Positions 46 to 61,484 of a DNA stretch of 64,000 nt are shown piece after piece. Made by a program: the position numbers and the translations under genes. This stretch comes from Camelus ferus (Eukaryota). The notes below the pieces were generated by a model. It had not been told where the DNA came from, did no database searches, and worked only from the letters and a program-made list of their open reading frames with translations. Position 1 is the first letter of the stretch; every line of letters begins with the position of its first letter. Where the stretch lies: contig NC_045715.1 in assembly GCF_009834535.1 (NCBI RefSeq), forward strand, positions 22,072,001 through 22,136,000, in the 5' to 3' direction.

Positions 46-3000
46 CTCCAGCTCATCCTTGGAGGCTGCATCCAGCATCACAAGGTCCTTCAAGAAGGTG
101 CCAAGGTATGGGACTACACCCTGAGGTTAGAGGTGAGAGTCAGTCACCCCCACCACTGATCCGAGGGCTCCCCATCCCTCCGTACTTCCCTATCCCACTG
201 CCTGAGAAAACAAGTTTAATTCTCCTCACCCAGAGTGCCTCCCCTTCGCATCCAGCAGACTGCTTCCACTCTCCCACATCCCTTACTCCTTCACAGCCAT
301 CCTCCATTTGTCACTCACCCCACCCCGGAAGCCAGACCTCGGGCCCTTCTTGGAATTCGGCTCTAGAGAGGGTTGCAGCTTCACCTCCTGGTGGTGACAG
401 AACATTAAGATATGGGGGTGGGAGGGAGGAGCAGGGAGGGCTGGCAATGCCAGGGAATAGGGCCTCACCTGCAGGAGTAGCTCCCGGCTCTGGGAATAAT
501 TATCCTCCTCGGAGAAAATCTGGCAGAGGCTGGAGAAGACTCTGAGGCTGTCCCTGGGGGGGGTGGCAGCAGCCTTGAGGATGGGCCTGACTCAGTTCTC
601 CCCTTCCCCACCCTCACCCCAGCCCAGTGCCCCATCCTCCCCACCTGGTTGTTTCCCCCCAGGCTGCCCGAAGCCTGTGAATGGGGCTGGATTGCAGGGC
701 CGACACAACAGCATAAACTGAAGAGAAGTTTCGGAGCAGGCGGCACTCCTGTGGGGGTCACAGAGGGAGGCTGCTGCTGTGGGACCTCTTTCCACACCAC
801 AGTCCCCAAGAGGGCTGGTCCTATCTCTTACTTGTGCCACGCGGATCCACTTCTCCAGGAGCCGGGCCCTCTGAGGGGGACGAAGTGGCCGGACGGTCAC
901 CTCCCCAGACCGTTCTCCAGCTGAGGTAGCCCCCAGGACAGAGCTGACCACTGCCCCTGCCACCTTGTTGAACTGAGTGACAGTAGCCCGGACAGATGGG
1001 CAGAGGTGGGAATGTCCTGGCCGGTCTCTGTGACCCCACAGGCCCCCCAGACACTGGGAGGGGACCAGATTGAGAAACAGCTCCTGCAGGGCAGAGGTCA
1101 GAGGTTAAATTTCATAGTCAAGTGAGGTCAGCCTTCAAATATCAGGGGTGTGAGGATCTCAAGTGGCCAAGAATCCAGAGGGACACAGGGTTTGAAGGGC
1201 AACAACCAAGGGGAAATGGGGAAAGGTCAAAACTGGGTGGACAGAGGAGACTGGGAGCTGGATCAGGAAGGACTGGAAGCAAGGTAAGGATCTGGAGTCA
1301 GGGACAGGNNNNNNNNNNNNNNNNNNNNNNNNNNNNNNNNNNNNNNNNNNNNNNNNNNNNNNNNNNNNNNNNNNNNNNNNNNNNNNNNNNNNNNNNNNNN
1401 NNNNNNNNNNNNNNNNNNNNNNNNNNNNNNNNNNNNNNNNNNNNNNNNNNNNNNNNNNNNNNNNNNNNNNNNGAGTCCACCCGGGACCGGAGGTTGCGGA
1501 TGAGGTCAGCGCTGTCCCCCCCAACACCCTCCCCAGCTGCATACCCTGTCCGAAGCAAGAAACTCTCAAGCCGGTCAAGCTGACCCTTGACCTCAGAGCC
1601 AAAATCTTCAGGGTGAGAGGCCAGCCAGGTTGACAGTACAGAGATGGCTACCCTGGGAGAAGGGGAATCAGCCAGGGGTCAGATGACAGGCTGCAGCTTG
1701 GGCATAGGGAACCGAGAGGTTAAGGGCCAGGGGTCACTCACCCTTTTGTCCTCTCTAGTTCATCAGTAGGATGAGATTCAAGGGCTTCCAGCCTGGGGAG
1801 GGGAAGAGATTCTATCTGTCCGTTTTTTCCAAACCCCCAGTGGCTTTGACTATTTTGGTGACTATTCTGGCTTTAGAAAGTCCAGACACCTCCATGACCC
1901 TTGGTCTCTTATGACCCTGACCTGTCAGCCACAAGCCCTAGTAGGGCAGGTGTAGAGGTGAAGGCCCGGTGGGTGGCCAGGAAGGCTGCTGTGAAGGTCA
2001 CGTCAGCCCCTGATGTCCGGGCATCCAGCAGGTGTCGGACAAGGGCCTCCAGTGTGCCAGCTCGCAGCCTCCGGGAGGAACGCGGGGGAGGCCTCGGGGC
2101 CTGGGGAAGACAGAGGGCCCTTTTTCAACTCTGCCCCTAGGTCTCTGGGGGAAAAAATCCCAGACCTAGGAGAAGATCCAGGCTCACTGTATTAAAACTC
2201 AGAGAGAGCAGAAGACTTGACCTAAGTCACACAGCAGAGTCCGGTCTCCAGACCTCTAACCTAGCACTCCAGCCAGAAAGTTGGTCAGAGGGAGGGGAAC
2301 TGGGAGGCCAGAAGTCAAAGTTATGATCTCACCAAGGGATCAAGAGGCTGATACTGGCGACTTGTGACAGTAAAGATGGCACCATCCTCCTCCTCATCCC
2401 AGACAGATACAGGGACCTGGAGGAGCAAGGCAGGGTAGGTCAGAAAGTTCCACACCCCAACTGCCCAACCCTTACCCCCAGGCCCAACTCCTCCCTTGGT
2501 ACCCCTCACCTGTTGCGGAGGGAGGCAGTACCAGCGAGTACGAGGGGTGGGGGGGGCTGGTGACCCCAGGTCTCCCCCACTGGGGCCCAGACAGCCCCCC
2601 CCAAGCCGTCTTAGGGCCCGGTGGAGTCTAGGAAGTAGTAGTGGGGGGTTGGATGGAATGCAGAAACCCTGATCCTGGAGACTGCTGTAGCCCCTTCCCC
2701 CCAGAGCTGAACCCCAGAACAGAAGAGGATCAAGGCGCAAAGTGTAGAAAGGGGAAAGCGAGAAAGGTAGAAAGCCTGAGGCAGAGACCTTGAGAAGCTG
2801 AAACCTGTCACAGGCACAGCCGCATGCTCCGCCCTCCCCCGCAGGAACTGGCCAAGCCCAAAGAGTTAGTCCTTCCCCTTAGCCCCCTTTCCCCGGGTCC
2901 CTCAGCCCTGGAGACCCCCCTCAAGGTGGCGGCTCAGATCCCAATACAGGAAGGAGAAGGGGAAGTGGGTTGATGGGGGGGGGGCGTAGACTCAGAGAGT

Positions 3001-3835
3001 CATGTGACCCAGCCCTTCCCCCAACCGATCCCGAAAAACCAGACCTGCTAGTCACCCAGACTCTGGACCCAAGAGTCCAAAGCCTCGGGGCTCCAAATCC
3101 AACTTCTGGCCCTTCCCGAGGCCCCAATCCCAGCCACCGCCATTAGTCCCATAGAAAAGCAGGTGACCACCCGCCGATCGGCCTGGGATGGTCCCTTCAA
3201 GGTCCGAGAACCTTGGCTTCCCGCCTCCACCCAGCCCGAGGCTGGTGGGGGGAGGGGTCACGAAATCGAAGGGTTCCTTCCCCAATCCTGGATTCAGAGG
3301 AGCGGGTTACTGTGGAAACAAACCCCTCCCCGGCAAACAAAAATAAGGAGGGAGGCAGGGACCTAGACAAAATGCCCAGAGACAAGCACAAGCGGGCATA
3401 GGTGGAGCGGGCCAGAGACCCGCAGGAGAGCCAGCCAGACGCTCCTGGCAGAAACCGGGCAGGTTCCTGCGGGCAGGTCCTGAATCACACTGCCACAGAG
3501 AACCACAGAAACGCCGGGACTCCCCGCAGCGGGGAGACAGGCAGACACCAGCAAGGGGCACGGAAGTAGCTGAGGCTGGGAGGAAGAGATGAAGGGACAC
3601 AGAGACACGAAGAGAAAGGTGGAGAGTCTCTGAAATATACACGCCCAACCTCCCACCACCCGCATCTCACCTCGTCTTCTTCTTCCTCCTCCTCCTCCTC
3701 CTCCTCCTGCCCCCCGCCCACGCCCCGGCCACCTGGGCCCCCACCCTCTTCGGGGTCTCGGCTCCGGAAGCTGCTCAGCACGACTCCCCCGGAGGGGCTC
3801 GTGTCCCAAAGCAGCCGCAGGGGCCGCGGGAGCAT
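46..3835 (-). CDS. RGL2: Ral guanine nucleotide dissociation stimulator-like 2, 5' part (gene continues off the left edge)
   Basis: ATG at 3835 gives [32 protein letters not shown]. Phase-consistent GT-AG coding exons: 3671-3835, 2333-2416, 1922-2100, 1742-1792, 1652-(gap 1309-1472), 832-1083, 645-748, 469-553, 319-387, 46-120. Peptides match RGL2 REM and CDC25 RasGEF regions as recalled ([33 protein letters not shown]). Confidence 0.97.
1309..1472. other. Assembly gap (N x164) covering the end of an RGL2 exon
   Basis: Run of N. Confidence 0.99.
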
Positions 3836-4620
3836 GGCCGAGTGAAGGAATCAGCGGGGTCGGGCCATGGGGGCGCCTGGGGAGAGACAGGAGGGGGAGG
3901 CAGGTGGAGAGTCAGGTGGGCGCGGGGAAGCCGGGAGGGGAGGTACGCGGGTGGGTTCTATGTTTTACTAGATGGGAGTCCTGCAGGGAGGCTGGGCGGG
4001 GGGCAACACAGGGGTGGAATTGGGGGGGGGGGCTGGTGCATTTTGAGGATGGGGGTCACGAGTACAGGAACGGGCAGGGTCACTGGGTGCTCTGGCTCTG
4101 ACCTGCTCTGGATGGGTGGGGGCAGCGCGGGTCCCGGGCCGCTGTTCCCGTCCGTCTCCGGCCCCCGATCAAGTTCCTGGACTGAGTCCCCTCCCCGGCT
4201 TTTCCGCACCCCCTTGTACCCCCCCCCCCCCGCCAGACTCCCGGGCCCTCCCGCCCTTTCCGCTCCCCCCAACGTCCGCCCGCTCCGAGAGCAGGAGCCA
4301 AAAAGGGAAGGAAGTGAGGACAGGAGCCAGGGCTGCGGACTAGGGGAGCGTTGGACACCAGAGGTCAGGACCCAGAGGCCCGGGTCACGAGCAACGCTGT
4401 CCTTGGGTCCCACTGACTCGGGGATCCTGGAATTCAATTCGCCCCGCACTGAATTGGGATAAAGATTCCAGTCTCCAGCCCCCGGGGAAGAGCAGGAGCA
4501 GTATTTGACATCCCCCTCTCCCGACACAACGACGAGGCTAAAACTCCCGCGGGAAGTGTTTTAGGCTGGGACGGACCTAGTTACTCCAGCCTTCGGGGTT
4601 ACTCTCCCACCCGCACTCAC

Positions 4621-4975: not shown

Positions 4976-4981
4976 TTTATT
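4976..4981 (-). terminator. Probable TAPBP polyadenylation signal (AATAAA)
   Basis: TTTATT on + strand about 1.07 kb past the TAPBP stop and just upstream of the RGL2 promoter; assignment is inference. Confidence 0.55.
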
Positions 4982-17449: not shown

Positions 17450-18200
17450 GGCCCCAAGTTACCTATAACCCCGCCCATTAGGCCCCGCCCTTCTCAAGAT
17501 CCGCCCCGTAGCTCTTTTGGCCCCGCCCCTTGCCTTCCCCCGCCCACATCGGACCCCGCCCCCCTCTGCTCCGCCCCAAGCGCTACTTTGACCTCCTCTC
17601 CCACCCGGAAGNNNNNNNNNNNNNNNNNNNNNNNNNNNNNNNNNNNNNNNNNNNNNNNNNNNNNNNNNNNNNNNNNNNNNNNNNNNNNNNNNNNNNNNNN
17701 NNNNNNNNNNNNNNNNNNNNNNNNNNNNNNNNNNNNNNNNNNNNNNNNNNNNNNNNNNNNNNNNNNNNNNNNNNNNNNNNNNCAGGCGGGCACCCCCACC
17801 CGAGCCGCTGGGCAATACTCGGCCGACTCGGCCACTTCGCCTTTAAAGAACAGTTGTCTCATTCCACCTTAAAGGTACCAGGTCTCTTCCGCCCCTGACT
17901 TAGGGCTTGGTTCGGCCGAAGCTCTCATTCCCTTTTAATTCGGTAAGCCTGCCTCTTCCCACTGGCGATGGGTCCTGGCCACGGCTGCCTGAGCTCCGCC
18001 CCCGAGCTGTGGCCATTAGCAGATTTGCGGGATCTAATCGCCCCGGTCTCCCAGCTTCCGACAGTCCCCCAGAAACCCCACCCCCTTCCTCCGGGCCTGG
18101 ATTGGCCAAATAACCTTGAGTAGGCCCCTGATTGGCCTTTTTACTGCTACCGCTCGAAGTGAGAAAGTAAAGCGCGTTCAAGAAGTTGAAGCACATTTTT
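17450..18200 (-). promoter_or_regulatory. ZBTB22: ZBTB22 CpG-rich promoter region
   Basis: Multiple CCCGCCC GC boxes (17470-17580), two ATTGG (CCAAT) boxes near 18101 and 18132, candidate donor ATAG|GTAAC at 17463; partly in gap 17612-17782. Confidence 0.6.
17612..17782. other. Assembly gap (N x171) in ZBTB22 promoter region
   Basis: Run of N. Confidence 0.99.
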
Positions 18201-18566: not shown

Positions 18567-21500
18567 CTAATCAGAATCTGAGAGCACGATGATCTCCTCT
18601 GGATCGCACTGTGTGGCCACACTCATCTGCAGGGGAGTGAGAGACAAAAAGTCAGAGAGGTCTGGAACATAGTGGGAGTTCGAGAAGCAGAGGGAAAGAC
18701 TTATCAGAGATTAAAAATTGGGGTGGGAAAAAAAGGAAGCAAGAGGACGTGGTGGGTGCAATATTCAGAGAACCCAAAAGAGAACAGTGAGAGAGAATGA
18801 AGTCAGGAAAAGTGTCCGCCTCTTACCTTATAAGTACCAGGCCTGAAGGGTTGTGATTGGGGGGTTTGGGACAACCGGGGTGGAAATGGACTACAGAGGG
18901 AGCTGGTCACCAGGCCATGGCTAGGAGAGTCCACCCTCGTTGAGGAATCAGCAACTGGAGCCATGGAAGCCAAGGGGGAAGGTGGGCTGGGCAGCGTACA
19001 TGTCTTCTTCCCATTCTTCCCACGCAATGCCCTTTGCCTTTCCACATAGCTAGGGACAGAAACATAAAGGTGTGGAGGGGTCTGGGGAGCCTGAGGCTGG
19101 AGGGGGAGTGTTCAGTTTCTCCCAGCAGACCCAGTTCCACAACATTCCTCTCAGAAAAAAGCCCCCTGGAGTCCCTCCTTGGCTTCCCTCTTCCCTCTCC
19201 TTGTTGCTATTACCTATTTCTTAATGGCCCTGCTTCTGTTTGCTTCTCCATCCGAGATTTCTTCCGGGGAGGACTGGCATCTCCCCAGGTGTGAGGAGAG
19301 ACACCTCCATTGAAGGAAGTGGAGGTGACCATGGCTGCTCCATTCTCCAAAACAGTGGTGAGGGGTTCCTCTGATTGCTTCCTGGAAGAGGAAACATCCC
19401 TCTCCTCAGGAGAAGGGGTTGTATCCAGAGGCAAGGCTTCAATCTCTAGCTCAAAGAGCTGAGACATAGGGCTCTCTTCCTCCAGGGGCAACTCTTCGAG
19501 GTGTTCTCCATTGCTTTCAGCATCTATGCTGGAGAGGGCTGGGGGCTCTTCTGACAGTGAAGATGGTGACACTGCGAGGCTTTTGTTTTGTTGCTCCCCT
19601 GAAGACCTGCTGATCCCTTTGCTAGGTTCCAGTTTCTTTTCGGTGGAGATCTGTAGCAGGGACGTGGGGCTCTTATCTCCATCCTTACCTGGAAAAGAAG
19701 TAAAGAGGAGAGAGGTAACAGAAGAACTAGGGGAGAGAAAACCGCTGAGAGGACACTAGGAGAAAGAGGAGGAAGAGGAGGAAGGGAAGGATCTCAAACA
19801 GGGGGCTCATGCCCAAGAGTAGAGGGAACTGACACATGGGAAGACTGTCCTTGACATACCTGCTTCCTCCTCCTCCTCTTCATCGTCCCCCTGACCTTCC
19901 TGCATCTGTTCCAGATCCTCCTCTTCTTCAGAATCTGTGGCGTCCTCCTCTTCTTCCTCCTCTTCTTCCTCCTCCTCCTCTTCCTCCTCCTCATCACTTT
20001 CCTCATCTTCTTCATCATCTGTCTCAGCCTTGAAGGTGGTAGGGCATTCCTGGGATGCCATCCCACTAGGGCCCTACAGGGAACAAAGGAGTTTCTCTAA
20101 GGAATCCCTTGCCCTAGAGGGGCTGGTTCTTGTGTTCCTTCTGCACACTTCCCTATCAGTCACCATGGACTCCCTCCTGGCCAGTGCAGGAAAAGGATAG
20201 GGTCTCTGAAGGGTGTTTCCCTTCCATACCTCACCAGAATCCAGGGAGGCTTTGGGGGGATCTACAGAGTGGGAAGAGGTGGCTTGGGGGAGCCGGGCTC
20301 TTCTCCTCTGTCTCTCGCCCTCCTCACTCTGGTCTTGCATCATTGCATATTTAGAGATGACCTCATCCAGACGGCTCATAGCCAAGCTCCGGTTCTCCCG
20401 CAGGCGCCGGGCGAGGGCAGGATCTGACAGTGCGGGATCAATGCCTATGTGGGAAGACATAAAGTCAGAGCAGTCACCCAGAACCCAACCCAGAAGGAGG
20501 GACTAGAGAGATGCCTCCTCCGCCACACACCTGACATACTAGGGTTACTTATGGGNNNNNNNNNNNNNNNNNNNNNNNNNNNNNNNNNNNNNNNNNNNNN
20601 NNNNNNNNNNNNNNNNNNNNNNNNNNNNNNNNNNNNNNNNNNNNNNNNNNNNNNNNNNNNNNNNNNNNNNNNNNNNNNNNNNNNNNNNNNNNNNNNNNNN
20701 NNNNNNNNNNNNNNNNNNNGCAGCTGCCTTCTCTACGGCCCGCAGCACATCTCCATAGTCAGGGAAGGTGTCAAGCCCTGGTTTGTTGATGAGCCGCTCA
20801 ATGCGCCTGTTCACCTCTGGGTAGCGGGTACCACGATAGGGGATGCGCTGCTCTATGACCCGGCCTGTCAGTGAAGAGCAGTCTTTCAGCTCACACAGCC
20901 GCCCAAAGAGGCGGATCAGCTTACGCTTCAACCTTGCCTCCTGCAGGTAAGTGGAGTCTGGGTCGTCCAGTTCTGAGAGATCCAGCTCCTTTTCCTGCAG
21001 CCGCCGGATCTCCGCTACATAGAGTGCTAGCAGCTGCTCCAAGCGCTGGATCTGCCGCCGGGAACCACGGGTCCTTGGGGCCTCAGAGGCAGTGGTCTCA
21101 GCATTTGTGGGGTCCGAGGAGGAGTCTGTGGGAGGGTTATTCCCAGAGGGCTCACTAGAGGTGGTGGCAGCAGGGGCCAGGTTCAGCTTCTTCTTGGCTG
21201 AGTGGGCCTTGAGGACAGTGCAGAGCTCATTAATGTAGACATAGAGCTTAGCTGGTCGGCTCTGAGCCCGAGAGAGGACCCGAGAGAGGATGTTGCAGAA
21301 CTCCGCGGAGGCCAAAAACAGAGAGTGGGCACGCTGCTGCCGGTTATAGAGGAATGGGACCACCTCAGGGTGGTCCGCTGTCTGCGTCTTACACAGTTCA
21401 AGGAACTGGAGGGTTCAGGGGAAAAGGGGAGGGGGAAAGAGACAAGGGATGGGGTTGAGAGAAAGAAGGCGTGGTGGGGTTAGTGGGGAAGAAAGGATAG

Positions 21501-55599: not shown

Positions 55600-56800
55600 A
55601 GCTTCGGCTTTCTCCCTAACTGGCCATCCCTGGAGTCGAGGGGCGGGGGCTTCAGCTCCCATACTCTGCCCTCCTCATCCACGTCGAGTTGTGCCCACTG
55701 GGTATCCACAGTACTAGTTGTTTTCCCTTTGCCACAGGCCACCCCAGCACCAGGCAGGAACTCCTTTGGTGAGTGTGGGAAGGTGGAAACCCGAGCCCGG
55801 GGCGGGACCGGCGCGCCCGCCCACAAACTGCTGGCTCTTTCCTCCCGCTCTTTCCCTGCCTTCGCGTTCGAACTGCCAGGGCTGGCCCCGCCCGCCGCCC
55901 ATTGGCTGGCTCTGGGCGGCGTCACCGCCTCGGTACGAGCCCTCCTGATCCATGCACCCGCCTTGGAAGTGCGGGGCGGGACGTACGCCTGCCGACTCGC
56001 GCCAACCGGGGAGAGCCACCGCCCCATAAAGGAGAGGCTCAGTCCTCCCAGGTGCCGCGCGCGGGAGGGGTCACGCGTGCGCAGAAGCGCGGCGGCAGTG
56101 AAGGGGGGAACAACTAACCACGGAGAGGGCGGGGCCGGGGGGGAAAAGGCGGGAGGGCGGGGCACTTGAGGGAGGAGGGCGTGGCGGGGGCAATGGGAAG
56201 GGTGAATGGAGGGCGGGGTCGTGAACTGGGGCCGGGGGGAGGGACTTGGAGTGACCATGAAGATTGGGGGGGCAGTTAACGGATGTGGCTTGGGGCGGGG
56301 GCCAGTCCGGAGGCCGGCTGCTGGGAGGGGGGATTCCCTCCTGCCCCGAGGGCAGGTCTCCCTTTGGAGGCAGGGGCTGCGGGGATTCCCTCTCCCGCCA
56401 GGTCCGACTGTCCGCCCGCACCGGCCGCGGAGAGATCGCCGCCGCTAGCCCCGCGCNNNNNNNNNNNNNNNNNNNNNNNNNNNNNNNNNNNNNNNNNNNN
56501 NNNNNNNNNNNNNNNNNNNNNNNNNNNNNNNNNNNNNNNNNNNNNNNNNNNNNNNNNNNNNNNNNNNNNNNNNNNNNNNNNNNNNNNNNNNNNNNNNNNN
56601 NNNNNNNNNNNNNNNNNNNNNNNNNNNNNNNNNNNNNNNNNNNNNNNNNNNNNNNNNNNNNNNNNNNNNNNNNNNNNNNNNNNNNNNNNNNNNNNNNNGC
56701 ACGCCCTCCGACGCCTAGACGTGCCCTCCCCGCGCGGGGGGTTCGCCTCGGTCTCCGACGTCTGCCTCTGCCCGGCTCTCGGCGGCCCCAGCTGTCACTG
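55600..56800 (+). promoter_or_regulatory. PHF1: PHF1 CpG-island promoter and non-coding exon 1
   Basis: Very CpG-rich, many GC boxes, ATTGG near 55901, donor CTG|GTAAGG at 56800; partly in gap 56457-56698. Confidence 0.75.
56457..56698. other. Assembly gap (N x242) in PHF1 CpG island
   Basis: Run of N. Confidence 0.99.
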
Positions 56801-57548: not shown

Positions 57549-60500
57549 ATGGCACAGCCCCCTCGGCTGAGCCGCTCTGGTGCCCCCCAACTTTGGGACC
57601 CAGCTTCCCCTGCTCCCACCTCAGGCCCCAGGCCTCGACTATGGGAGGGTCAAGATGTGCTGGCCAGGTGGACAGATGGGCTGCTATATTTGGGGACCAT
57701 CAAAAAGGTAGGACATTTGACCTCTGATCTGTCACCTTTTCTCCATTCCCCTCATCTAGTTCTGACTCCCATTTGACCTTCTGTGCTCAACCATTCCAGG
57801 TGGACAGTGCTCGGGAGGTGTGTCTGGTCCAGTTTGAGGATGATTCCCAGTTTCTGGTTCTATGGAAAGACATCAGCCCTGGTGAGACCCTAGAGGCCTG
57901 AGAGTGTGCATCCCATGGAAAACAGAAATTGGGCATGCGGGACCAAAGAGGGCTTAAGAACAGGCCCCTGACACTGTGTTCCCTCATAGCTGCCCTCCCG
58001 GGGGAGGAACTCCTCTGCTGTGTCTGTCGCTCTGAGACTGTGGTCCCTGGGAACCGGCTAGTCAGCTGTGAGAAGTGTCGCCATGGTGAGAGGGCAGGAC
58101 ACCTGAATGGTCCAGCTTGCCCTGGGCCTTCCAGGATGCCTCTGACCCTTCCCTACAACACTGTCCTTACACCACCTGTCCTGGCCTGAGTCCCCAAGCC
58201 ACTGCTCTGACTAGTCTCCCCAACCCTGTAACCTCACTCCTTTCCAGCACAGGGAGAGGTAGTCATGGGATGGAGATGTGTGAGCTTTGTGGGCAAAGAG
58301 TAGTTAAAATACACCCTTTTCTAACCGTATGACCTTGGACCTCCTAAACCCCTAGGAGCTTCAGTTGCATAAACATAATACACTTACCCTAGCAGGACTG
58401 TGGTCAAGGATGAAATGAGATGGATAAGACTCTTCTGTCCCAGTGTCTAGCACATACAGGTATGCAATGCAATGAGTGGTCTACCATCAATACTATCATT
58501 ATTCAGCTTACCACCAGGACTGCCACGTTCCAAGGGCCCCAGCCCCTGGAGAGGGAGAGGGCACATCCTGGGTCTGCCGCCAGTGTGTCTTTGCCATCGC
58601 CACCAAGGTAAAGGCACCTTCCTGTGGGAGCCTCCCACCCACAGCCTCTCCCAAGCCCTTCCTCCCCCCACCCCTCTGAAGCGGTCTGCTTGCTCCATCT
58701 CTGCAGAGGGGAGGTGCACTGAAGAAGGGCCCCTATGCCCGGGCCATGCTGGGCATGAAGCTTTCTCTGCCATACGGACTAAAGGGGCTGGACTGGGACG
58801 CTGGACATCTGAGCAACCGGCAGCAGAGCTACTGTTATTGTGGTGGCCCTGGGGAGTGAGTAATGAGGGGTGGGGGTTAAGGAATGAAAGATGAGGGTGT
58901 GGATCCTAGGGAATGAAGGAGAAAGAACAGGGTGAGGGGAGTGCTGAAGGGGGTGGGAGGAGGTAGTGAGCAGCGTTTGGGGCAGTTGGGGGGGTGTGTT
59001 TGGAGCTCAGTAGTCCTGTGCTTCCCCTCAGGTGGAACCTGAAAATGCTGCAGTGCCGGAGCTGCCTGCAGTGGTTCCACGAGGCCTGCACCCAGTGTCT
59101 GAGCAAGCCCCTCCTCTACGGGGACAGGTGACTTAGGGCGGCTCTCCCTCCCACCCCATAACCACTCTCTCCCCAACATCTGAAGCTTTGCTTACCTGTT
59201 CGCCCCACCCTTGCTCAGGAGTCCTCCACAGCACAGTGTAGTTTTCCTGGGTAAGGTGCATTCTCTCCCTCTTGCCCACATCCAGGTTCTATGAGTTTGA
59301 ATGCTGTGTGTGTCGGGGGGGCCCTGAGAAGGTCCGGAGGCTGCAGCTTCGCTGGTGAGCTGGATGAGGCACTACCCCAGCGTAACTCCTCTCTCAACAC
59401 CCCCATGATTTCACCTTACGCACCCCAGTTCACTGCCCTGGACCCCCCTGGCTTTTGTGAACGCTTCCACAACCTTGACAAACCAATATTTCTCCAGGGT
59501 GGATGTGGCGCATCTTGTCCTCTATCACCTCAGTGTTTGCTGTAAGAAAAAATACTTTGATTTTGACCGTGAGATCCTCCCCTTCACCTCTGAGAATTGG
59601 GACAGTTTGCTCCTTGGGGAGGTAAGGGGTAGTGGAGCTCTGGGGGTTAGGGTGGAAGAGGGAGATGTGAAGAAAAGGGGTAGGGAGGGATCACTGCTCC
59701 CCTGACCCCATTTTCCTTCCCCAGCTCTCAGACACTCCCAAGGGAGAACGTTCTTCCAAGCTCCTCTCCGCTCTCAACAGCCACAAGGACCGGTGAGTTG
59801 GAGGGAGGCTCAGAGATGGACAAGTGGATATGGAAGCCTGGGACGGGAGGGGCTGCCACCCACCTGGGAGATCATCTCTGAAAAGGACTGAGGAACAGTA
59901 TATAAGAGGGCCCCTTTTCTATAGCACTGACCCTGTATCATTTCTCTCCTCACCCCAGTTTCATTTCAGGGAGGGAGATTAAGAAGAGGAAATGCTTGTT
60001 TGGTCTCCATGCTCGGATCCCTCCCCCTGTGGAGCCCCCTACTGGAGATGGAGCCCCCACCAGGTCACTGGTCCAGGGGGGATGGGGAAGTTCTCAGGGT
60101 CTATGTATGGAAATGGGGNNNNNNNNNNNNNNNNNNNNNNNNNNNNNNNNNNNNNNNNNNNNNNNNNNNNNNNNNNNNNNNNNNNNNNNNNNNNNNNNNN
60201 NNNNNNNNNNNNNNNNNNNNNNNNNNNNNNNNNNNNNNNNNNNNNNNNNNNNNNNNNNNNNNNNNNNNNNNNNNNNNNNNNNNNNNNNNNNNNNNNNNNN
60301 NNNNNNNNNNNNNNNNNNNNNNNNNNNNNNNNNNNNNNNNNNNNNNNNNNNNNNACTGCAGGTACAGGGGCAAGGGAACCCCATGGGGCAAATGGTGGTG
60401 TGGGAAGGAATCAAGGATTATCTCTCAGTCCTTTGCTCCTTTTAGGCCTCAGTGTCTCCACCACCCTCCAGTCCTAACCAGAGTTACCAGGGCAGCAGCG

Positions 60501-61341
60501 GCTACAACTTCCGTCCCACAGATGCCCGCTGCCTGCCCAGGTCAGTGCTCCTCCACCCTCCAACCAGATATGCTCCCTCAGAACCTCTCTTCCAATTGTC
60601 TACATCTTCTTCTGGACTTTCTCACTCAGAATTCTTTTCCCTCTCCCCTTTGGTTACCCACTTCTTGTCCTAGAGAGACTTCTAGAACCAATGTCTGCTT
60701 CCCAGTATCCTGGGGATGGGGGTTCCTTGAGGGTAGTGTTTGAGCTCCACCATTCTCAGGGGGAGAGGGTCCTGTTCCCCTGCTTCCTGTCCTGACTTTC
60801 CCCTCCCCAACCCCAGCAGTCCCATCCGGATGTTCGCTTCCTTCCACCCCTCTGCCAGCACCGCAGGGACCTCTGGGGATGGTGAACCCCCAGACAGGTG
60901 AGATTCTACCCCTTTATCTCTGATACTCCTCTTCACCTCTGTGTTAAGTTCCTCAGTCTCTAACCATTTTTTTGTTCCTCTGAGCCACACATGGCCTCCA
61001 TTTCTGGTTAATCCTTATCTATGCTGGACTCACAATTTCCTTCTCTCCCTAGGTCACCCCTGGAACTTCACATTGGTTTCCCCACAGATATCCCTAAAAG
61101 TGCCCCCCACTCGATGACTGCCTCATCTTCCTCAGTCCCTGCCCCCTCCCCAGGTCTCCCTAGACGCTCAGCGCCCTCTTCTCCCCTGTGCCGAAGTTTG
61201 TCTCCTGGGACTGGGGGAGGAGTCCGAGGTGGGGTTGGCTACCTGTCCNNNNNNNNNNNNNNNNNNNNNNNNNNNNNNNNNNNNNNNNNNNNNNNNNNNN
61301 NNNNNNNNNNNNNNNNNNNNNNNNNNNNNNNNNNNNNNNNN
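57549..61341 (+). CDS. PHF1: PHD finger protein 1 (Polycomb-like 1); stop lies in a gap, so the end is estimated
   Basis: Exons 57549-57707, 57800-57881, 57990-58085, 58507-58607, 58707-58855, 59032-59127, 59286-59354, 59498-59621, 59725-59792, 59959-60063, (gap)-60361, 60446-60540, 60817-60897, 61053-(gap 61249-61484). Tudor ([15 protein letters not shown]), two PHD fingers, winged-helix EH region. End estimated from the recalled 30-aa human tail. Confidence 0.97.
60119..60354. other. Assembly gap (N x236) covering most of one PHF1 exon
   Basis: Run of N followed by ACTGCAG|GTAC donor. Confidence 0.99.
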
Positions 61342-61484
61342 NNNNNNNNNNNNNNNNNNNNNNNNNNNNNNNNNNNNNNNNNNNNNNNNNNNNNNNNNNN
61401 NNNNNNNNNNNNNNNNNNNNNNNNNNNNNNNNNNNNNNNNNNNNNNNNNNNNNNNNNNNNNNNNNNNNNNNNNNNNNNNNNNNN
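61249..61484. other. Assembly gap (N x236) covering the PHF1 stop codon
   Basis: Run of N. Confidence 0.99.

Follow-up and report, generated by a model that had tools for sequence, protein, structure and literature searches.

RGL2 is a Ras effector and an exchange factor for Ral (RalGEF) and thereby connects Ras with Ral signalling; the REM/Ras-GEF domains follow its N-terminus. The closest described systems are the alternative 5' exons of the RalGDS family, where RALGDS, RGL1 and RGL2 each join a different 5' exon in phase 0 to the conserved ...WDEEEDG... exon (its counterpart reads ...IGEELINGV... in RALGDS and ...WGEEVEEGA... in RGL1). The human RefSeq variant 2 of RGL2 contains a different 5' exon and has its annotated start at a downstream Met, and isoform 2 in UniProt lacks residues 1–82. 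Here we describe the RGL2 locus in a 64,000-nucleotide stretch of Camelus ferus DNA (contig NC_045715.1, positions 22,072,001 to 22,136,000 of the forward strand; further referred to as the window) and a candidate alternative coding exon within the first coding intron of this gene. As in the family exons, its junction would be in phase 0 to the conserved exon. It differs from the human variant, the 5' exon of which is annotated as untranslated, in that the 5' exon here displays codon-level selection and contains no AUG.

Two other classes of systems are relevant. N-terminal extensions initiated at CUG codons are known for PTEN-L, MYC and FGF2, and a class of conserved non-AUG N-terminal extensions has reportedly been found by comparative genomics. 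The locus studied here shares with such extensions an open, codon-conserved frame located upstream of the annotated coding sequence, in frame with it and devoid of in-frame AUG, as well as an invariant CUG flanked by a purine at −3 and by G at +4. In contrast to them, the candidate extension would reside on an alternative first exon and not in the main 5' untranslated region (UTR), and the CUG start is inferred from the sequence. The second class is formed by exons discovered with PhyloCSF-type methods, which are characterized, as is the candidate exon, by third-position bias, omega below 1, frame-preserving indels and a boundary at a splice site, whereas the analysis presented here relies on 12 taxa and hand-made tests instead of a calibrated genome-wide score.

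The minus strand of the window carries the 5' part of a RalGDS-family gene, and its N-terminus agrees with that of RGL2. The intron between the ATG exon and exon 2 is 1254 nt long (61% G+C). It is the first coding intron, and its numbering as intron 2 or intron 1 hinges on a putative 5' UTR exon. In the orthologous open reading frames (ORFs) P0006 and P0008–P0014, which carry the Pfam RasGEF_N domain, exon 1 is spliced directly to exon 2. An earlier note on the window had proposed two hidden exons in this intron, here called block A (from 3285 to a donor at 3056) and block B (118 nt, 2627–2510). The description of block B was accurate: it is preceded by ...cttcctag|A and followed by CAG|GTGAGG, and it reads LHRALRRL...LPPQQ in frame with exon 2 at 2416. 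Likewise, the phase arithmetic between blocks A and B and exon 2 is correct, exon 1 does encode 55 residues, and the 93-nt spacer between block B and exon 2 is stop-free in the window. The canonical exons and the elements of the candidate exon, in the order of transcription, are as follows.

3835–3671, minus strand: canonical ATG exon (exon 1) of RGL2, 55 codons (...EEEDE), phase-0 donor GAG|GTGAGA.
2713–2510, minus strand: candidate alternative coding exon "1b" of 68 codons; nowhere else in the intron is a reading frame preserved in evolution.
2704–2702, minus strand: CTG codon in frame 0, candidate non-AUG start, invariant (12/12 taxa), context GCTCTGG (G at −3, G at +4).
2676–2675, minus strand: invariant AG (12/12 taxa), possible acceptor that would give the exon 2674–2510 (165 nt, phase 0).
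2674–2633, minus strand: 14 codons, rich in pyrimidines and in Pro, that would be a coding linker free of constraint or else a polypyrimidine tract.
2632–2510, minus strand: core under purifying selection, approximately block B and the two preceding codons (Pro, Arg).
2629–2628, minus strand: AG of the acceptor cttccTAG|A proposed earlier for block B, score 3.3, good in this species and clade-specific.
2509–2504, minus strand: donor GTGAGG after CAG, phase 0, identical in 10/12 taxa.
2509–2417, minus strand: 93-nt intron between the candidate exon and exon 2, stop-free here, not coding.
2416–2333, minus strand: canonical exon 2 of RGL2, the next coding exon (...PLDPL), spliced in locus L011.
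2100–1922, minus strand: canonical exon 3 of RGL2, without Met in this species.

Orthologues were retrieved by a word-index protein search with the 139-residue read-through ORF (2740–2324) and then with the canonical N-terminus. Contigs of 11 further distinct taxa (L001, L004, L005, L009, L010, L012–L017) proved to be colinear with the window over the intron. Together with the window they form a set of 12 mammalian sequences with pairwise identity of 0.56–0.95. The comparative tests were based on the MAFFT alignment of these sequences and the FastTree topology. Fitch parsimony changes were counted by codon position, and omega was estimated with the GY codon model and compared with omega = 1 by the likelihood-ratio test. 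Splice sites were scored with a crude consensus weight matrix, and these scores serve for ranking only.

The core 2632–2510 evolves as a coding sequence. The changes by codon position are 15/28/52 (p=1.5e-5) at the rate of 0.77, and omega equals 0.40 (likelihood-ratio test against omega = 1, p=6e-5). These values are comparable to those of exon 2, where the changes are 5/16/32, the rate is 0.63 and omega is 0.30 (p=5e-5); in exon 1 the changes are 11/18/32. The other two sense frames over block B yield omega of 3.1 and 1.3. In a sliding scan of the region 3950–2250, periodicity is significant in block B and in the two exons 1 and 2, and nowhere else. The periodicity of block B persists when the most divergent taxon is omitted (p=0.004) and when two possibly degenerate taxa are omitted as well (p=0.002; the taxa in question are L010, L012 and L013), and it is seen in the window's own five-taxon clade (1/5/10, p=0.02). 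The part of the core between 2612 and 2535 is almost invariant in nearer taxa.

The pattern of insertions and deletions points to the same frame. Five out of six indels in 2713–2510 are multiples of three (−9, +6, +6, −12 and −3), the lone exception being −1 in L013, whereas most of the 6–14 gap runs per 60 nt in the flanks have lengths not divisible by three. The length of this segment is a multiple of three in 11/12 taxa (204, 210, 210 and 183 nt among the values), and its sense frame 0 is the only one of the six frames that is open in 11/12 taxa, with stops interrupting each antisense frame in most taxa. At the 3' end, the codon periodicity and the low rate stop exactly at CAG|GTGAGG (2510|2509), which is the strongest donor of the region (7.4 bits). 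The two taxa that deviate from it have GTTAGG (L012) and GTGATG three bases earlier (L010). Immediately downstream, the 93-nt intron has changes of 45/55/54, the rate of 1.66, omega of 1.02 and many indels that are not multiples of three.

None of the comparative tests drew on the information behind the earlier choice of block B. Since the tests of periodicity, omega, frame and donor are independent of that choice, we take block B to be coding and in frame with exon 2, and consider this likely. The frame read for it in the earlier note, as well as its phase-0 junction to exon 2, thus agree with the coding-type evolution, frame and donor observed in the alignment. Several other origins of the signal were considered. 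One plus-strand frame shares the wobble columns and hence the omega of block B, but it is interrupted by stops in most taxa, and an antisense gene was rejected. The resemblance of block B to exon 1 (LPRPLRLL...SPSGG and ...GPSGG, respectively) does not reflect a duplication, as local DNA and protein alignments score no better than shuffled sequences (P about 0.3). A search of the Atlas for look-alikes of block B produced chance-level matches only (0.72 at most).

The 5' limit of the coding frame is set by the alignment. It cannot extend beyond about 2713, because L012 has an in-frame TAG at 2716–2714 and +1/−1 indels occur at about 2716. Between block B and the next upstream stop no in-frame ATG was found in any of the 11 taxa that were checked, L010 having no anchor at the reference column, and 2823–2510 contains no ATG in any frame. 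The invariant CTG at 2704 is situated at the 5' edge of the frame-preserved region. Moreover, exon 3 encodes no Met in this species, so that a transcript lacking exon 1 would need a non-AUG start to produce a full-length protein. Because there is no in-frame ATG in 11 taxa and the candidate acceptors described below are weak or not conserved, we favour an intronic alternative first exon of RGL2 with CUG initiation at 2704 as the most likely entry into this frame, with the probability of roughly 0.4.

According to this model, RGL2 would possess a conserved alternative 5' exon that is translated, with block B as its constrained 3' part. Transcription would start within the intron, at a point downstream of the conserved blocks that carry an E-box and ETS-like and GC-box motifs, and translation would begin at the CTG 2704, which has a good Kozak context; both steps are our reading of the sequence. 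The donor CAG|GTGAGG (2510|2509) would be spliced in phase 0 to canonical exon 2. The predicted product is an RGL2 proteoform in which the 55-residue acidic N-terminus is swapped for a basic, Pro-rich leader of about 65 residues. The existence of such a second conserved proteoform in full, with an intronic promoter, a CUG start and a basic proline-rich leader of about 65 residues that includes a conserved PPTP (Pro-x-Thr-Pro) site, is proposed tentatively. The upstream blocks are the following.

3370–3251, minus strand: conserved non-coding element overlapping block A at its 5' end, with a strong acceptor-like sequence tttgtttccacag|TAAC.
3057–2990, minus strand: the most conserved non-coding block of the intron, which begins at GTGACT, the donor proposed earlier for block A, and contains an E-box.
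2967–2904 and 2840–2765, minus strand: further conserved non-coding blocks with CTTCC (ETS-like) repeats and a pair of GGGCGG and GCATGCG.

The block 3370–3251 has the rate of 0.67–0.98, few indels and no codon periodicity (12/13/15 and 13/16/16). The block 3057–2990, roughly 70 nt long, is alignable in all 12 taxa (rate 0.82–0.90, no periodicity); most taxa have the E-box CACGTGAC, and the clade of the window has CACATGAC. A regulatory function of this block is probable. The blocks 3370–3251, 2967–2904 and 2840–2765 together look like promoter or enhancer sequence.

Several observations weigh against an intronic first exon with a CUG start. CpG observed/expected near the candidate exon is low (0.23–0.36), which is not that of a CpG-island promoter, and a promoter of this type at the exon is not supported. 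The 14 codons 2674–2633, within the presumed leader, evolve without protein-level constraint: the changes are 21/25/24, the rate is 1.67, omega is 1.18, and the single indel is +6 in L012. The periodicity of the segment 2713–2675, which contains the CTG, is suggestive at best (5/8/15, p=0.06; rate 0.72, omega 0.59, p=0.22). Depletion of ATG is also observed in control stretches of the intron and thus is not specific to the putative leader. The sister taxa L012 and L013 look degenerate over the candidate exon: L013 carries a 1-nt deletion giving a stop, and L012 has the weakened donor GTTAGG and many amino-acid replacements in addition to the upstream TAG. These may be cases of lineage-specific exon loss or, for L013, a contig error. 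Finally, every spliced N-terminal ORF of 76–346 amino acids found in public assemblies, NCBI and UniRef represents the canonical junction of exon 1 and exon 2.

All sequences containing block B among the ORFs of 76–346 residues are unspliced genomic-type contigs. The search was limited by ORF length (at most 346 amino acids) and so covered N-terminal fragments and not full-length isoforms; well-curated genomes may already have an annotation of the candidate exon. Of the sampled words of 2300–3900, 93–96% are found in contigs of several bulk RNA-seq runs, in which the whole intron is thus present, and only 7–8% in poly(A) blood runs. The former value suggests sizeable intron retention or pre-mRNA in some libraries and has no bearing on block B. 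Scans of metagenome contigs, the power of which for this purpose is very low, gave no matches to the junction of block B with exon 2 or to that of exon 1 with 2674. A literature search for an alternative first exon, alternative promoter, isoform, non-AUG start or PhyloCSF signal of RGL2 revealed nothing relevant.

The same coding block could be entered without a new start codon if it were an in-frame cassette between exon 1 and exon 2, with AG 2676–2675 as the acceptor. The cassette 2674–2510 (165 nt, 55 codons) would add 55 residues after the acidic stretch. The AG at 2675 is present in 12/12 taxa, the length of the cassette is a multiple of three in 11/12 taxa (165, 171 or 153 nt, and 150 nt in L010 with its earlier donor), and both junctions are in phase 0. 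Moreover, the adjoining upstream block 2713–2675 shows the conservation typical of intronic sequence next to regulated exons. However, the context of this AG is poor: a G-run precedes the polypyrimidine tract, in which only 7/16 bases are pyrimidines, and the site has a crude score of −4.3 and competes with AGs 7–10 nt upstream (at −8/−9 and −11/−12). The first 14 codons of the cassette would be coding and yet evolve neutrally, and the upstream block, which would be intronic, hints at the same codon periodicity and has a 9-nt deletion, of in-frame length, in L010. No ORF composed of exon 1, the insert and exon 2 was observed among the database matches, and the 3671>2674 junction was absent from the metagenome scan, which has very little power. 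We regard the cassette as unlikely.

The second possibility is that block B is a conserved non-coding element (an enhancer, a promoter-proximal element, a splicing regulator or an untranslated 5' exon) and its periodicity is coincidental. This would agree with the presence of several other strongly conserved non-coding blocks in the intron, with the near invariance of 2612–2535 in nearer taxa, and with the absence of a start codon from block B; in addition, a G/C-rich hairpin can be drawn. In contrast, both the periodicity and the omega test are significant at the levels given above irrespective of how the block was chosen, the indels keep the frame, and the other conserved blocks display no periodicity. 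The fold is no better than those of shuffled sequences (z=−0.28), and no Rfam family was matched. Hence a non-coding element is improbable. A structured RNA or miRNA at block B was rejected given the same fold score and sub-threshold Rfam matches only (E at least 0.2).

Block B could also be part of an internal coding exon that follows some other upstream exon, with the acceptor either at 2708–2707 (phase 1) or, only in the window's clade, at TAG 2629–2628 (phase 2). A donor of the matching phase could lie in exon 1, for example CAG|GTGGCC at codon 36. The acceptor at 2708–2707, ...gttctggggttcag|C, has a better tract, scores 2.6 and is present in 10/12 taxa; the TAG acceptor scores 3.3; and frame preservation begins at about 2713. 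But each of these AGs is missing in some taxa. In place of the AG at 2708–2707, L012 and L010 carry one located 7 nt upstream, in a different phase. The AG of the TAG acceptor is found in 5/12 taxa that form a single clade (the window, L016, L015, L005 and L017), and in the other taxa this codon is CGA or CGG (synonymous with AGA, Arg), CCA or CCT. Outside exon 1, exon 2 and block B, the region 3950–2250 shows no coding signature from which a start could come, and the 118-nt version spliced from the normal donor of exon 1 shifts the frame and leads to a stop in exon 2. Such an exon is therefore quite improbable.

Block A, the other exon proposed earlier, behaves differently.

3306–3055, minus strand: block A, an 84-codon stop-free frame within ordinary intron; the earlier note placed its start at 3285 and its donor end at 3056.

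The frame is indeed open from 3306 to 3055, ends with ...LLGPESG and meets GG|GTGACT at 3056/3055. However, open frames are uninformative in this intron. Its three frames contain only 5, 9 and 10 stops, the longest open run is 154 codons, and a run of at least 84 codons is present in 99% of first-order Markov shuffles of the intron. The stop-free frames that had been considered noteworthy are consequently not beyond chance expectation.

With 1.55 changes per site, block A evolves at the rate of the surrounding intron (1.3–1.7). In the proposed frame its changes by codon position are flat (116/126/112, p=0.64), omega is 1.13 (p=0.36 against omega = 1), and there are 6–10 distinct gap runs per 60 nt, mostly non-multiples of three, with frameshifting indels in most taxa. 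Only the first ~50 nt are conserved, and they belong to the non-coding element 3370–3251, which has no periodicity. The block contains no ATG, the codon at 3285 being TTG, and neither nearby AG allows in-frame entry from the phase-0 donor of exon 1. The donor TGG|GTGACT scores 0.5 bits, and the neighbouring donors, 3.3–7.4 bits. The conservation of GTGACT is not about splicing, because this sequence is part of the E-box-containing block conserved in all taxa. Block A is plain intron that happens to be stop-free, as judged from its evolution, and the claim that it is a coding exon fails.

The window species lacks an additional segment of 10–14 bases (CTGGGTGAGG...) located in other taxa just upstream of GGGTGACT, at 3056–3071. 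The segment is recognizable in 10/11 other taxa, being degenerate in L010, and in most of them supplies a better donor-like site GTGAGG.

The earlier note also suggested that the PRFSDL motif of block A occurs in long isoforms of RALGDS and RGL1, which would make it part of an ancient family-wide module. A search with phmmer of 1.84 billion cluster representatives gave no RalGDS-family match to the block A frame, although isoforms could hide behind the 50%-identity clusters; the sole match was an unrelated bacterial repeat protein (E=2.7e-5). The 84-residue translation had no match in Pfam and none among short proteins in the word-index search. The motif recurs in read-through ORFs of the same intron in other species (P0029), which is DNA-level orthology and not a paralogue module. 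In P0029 (locus L013), the exon 1 read-through ORF continues in frame into the frame of block A. This ORF shows how predicted long isoforms with the motif could arise by intron retention in some species.

The whole model of the earlier note, in which splicing links block A (to 3056), block B (from 2627) and exon 2, so that RGL2 would share with RALGDS and RGL1 an N-terminus of 116 residues or more, is consistent with the matching phases and with all three pieces being stop-free in this species, but it is already contradicted by the comparative data and very improbable, given that block A is neutral with frameshifting indels, its weak donor falls into a conserved non-coding block while other taxa have a better site in the segment missing here, neither block contains an ATG, no family match was found for block A, and the junction cannot be ancestral because the TAG acceptor of block B, good as it is in this species, is restricted to the window's clade. 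Hence only half of the interpretation given in the note holds: very probably, block B does represent part of a genuine coding exon that is joined to exon 2, and block A, the A-to-B junction, the long N-terminus and the family module are unsupported.

The surroundings of the gene are as follows. In one orthologous contig, an ORF upstream of RGL2 has a weak match to the immunoglobulin C1-set, and the window contains AATAAA at 4981; both fit TAPBP as the upstream neighbour gene. In several taxa the RGL2 ATG is reached by long open frames that cross the 5' flank (P0022, P0025), and the 5' flank 3836–4530 of the window contains a 189-residue ORF at 3958–4527. Such frames in the promoter or 5' UTR are probably open by chance, as the sequence is GC-rich. 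The window also contains runs of N with the length of 164–242 bases at 1309–1472, 17612–17782, 20556–20719, 56457–56698, 60119–60354 and 61249–61484, the first of which falls within the RGL2 gene body.

In GC-rich introns, most open frames of compatible phase are noise, as is block A, and to tell such noise from the real signal of block B a small alignment across species suffices. If the exon of human variant 2 ends at the orthologue of position 2510, then the exon itself is known, and the new element is selection at the protein level in the absence of AUG. In annotation based on AUG, a form started at CUG would appear as untranslated or would not appear at all. If true, the conserved alternative N-terminus would mean a second regulated form of RGL2, possibly with different localisation, phosphorylation or autoinhibition.

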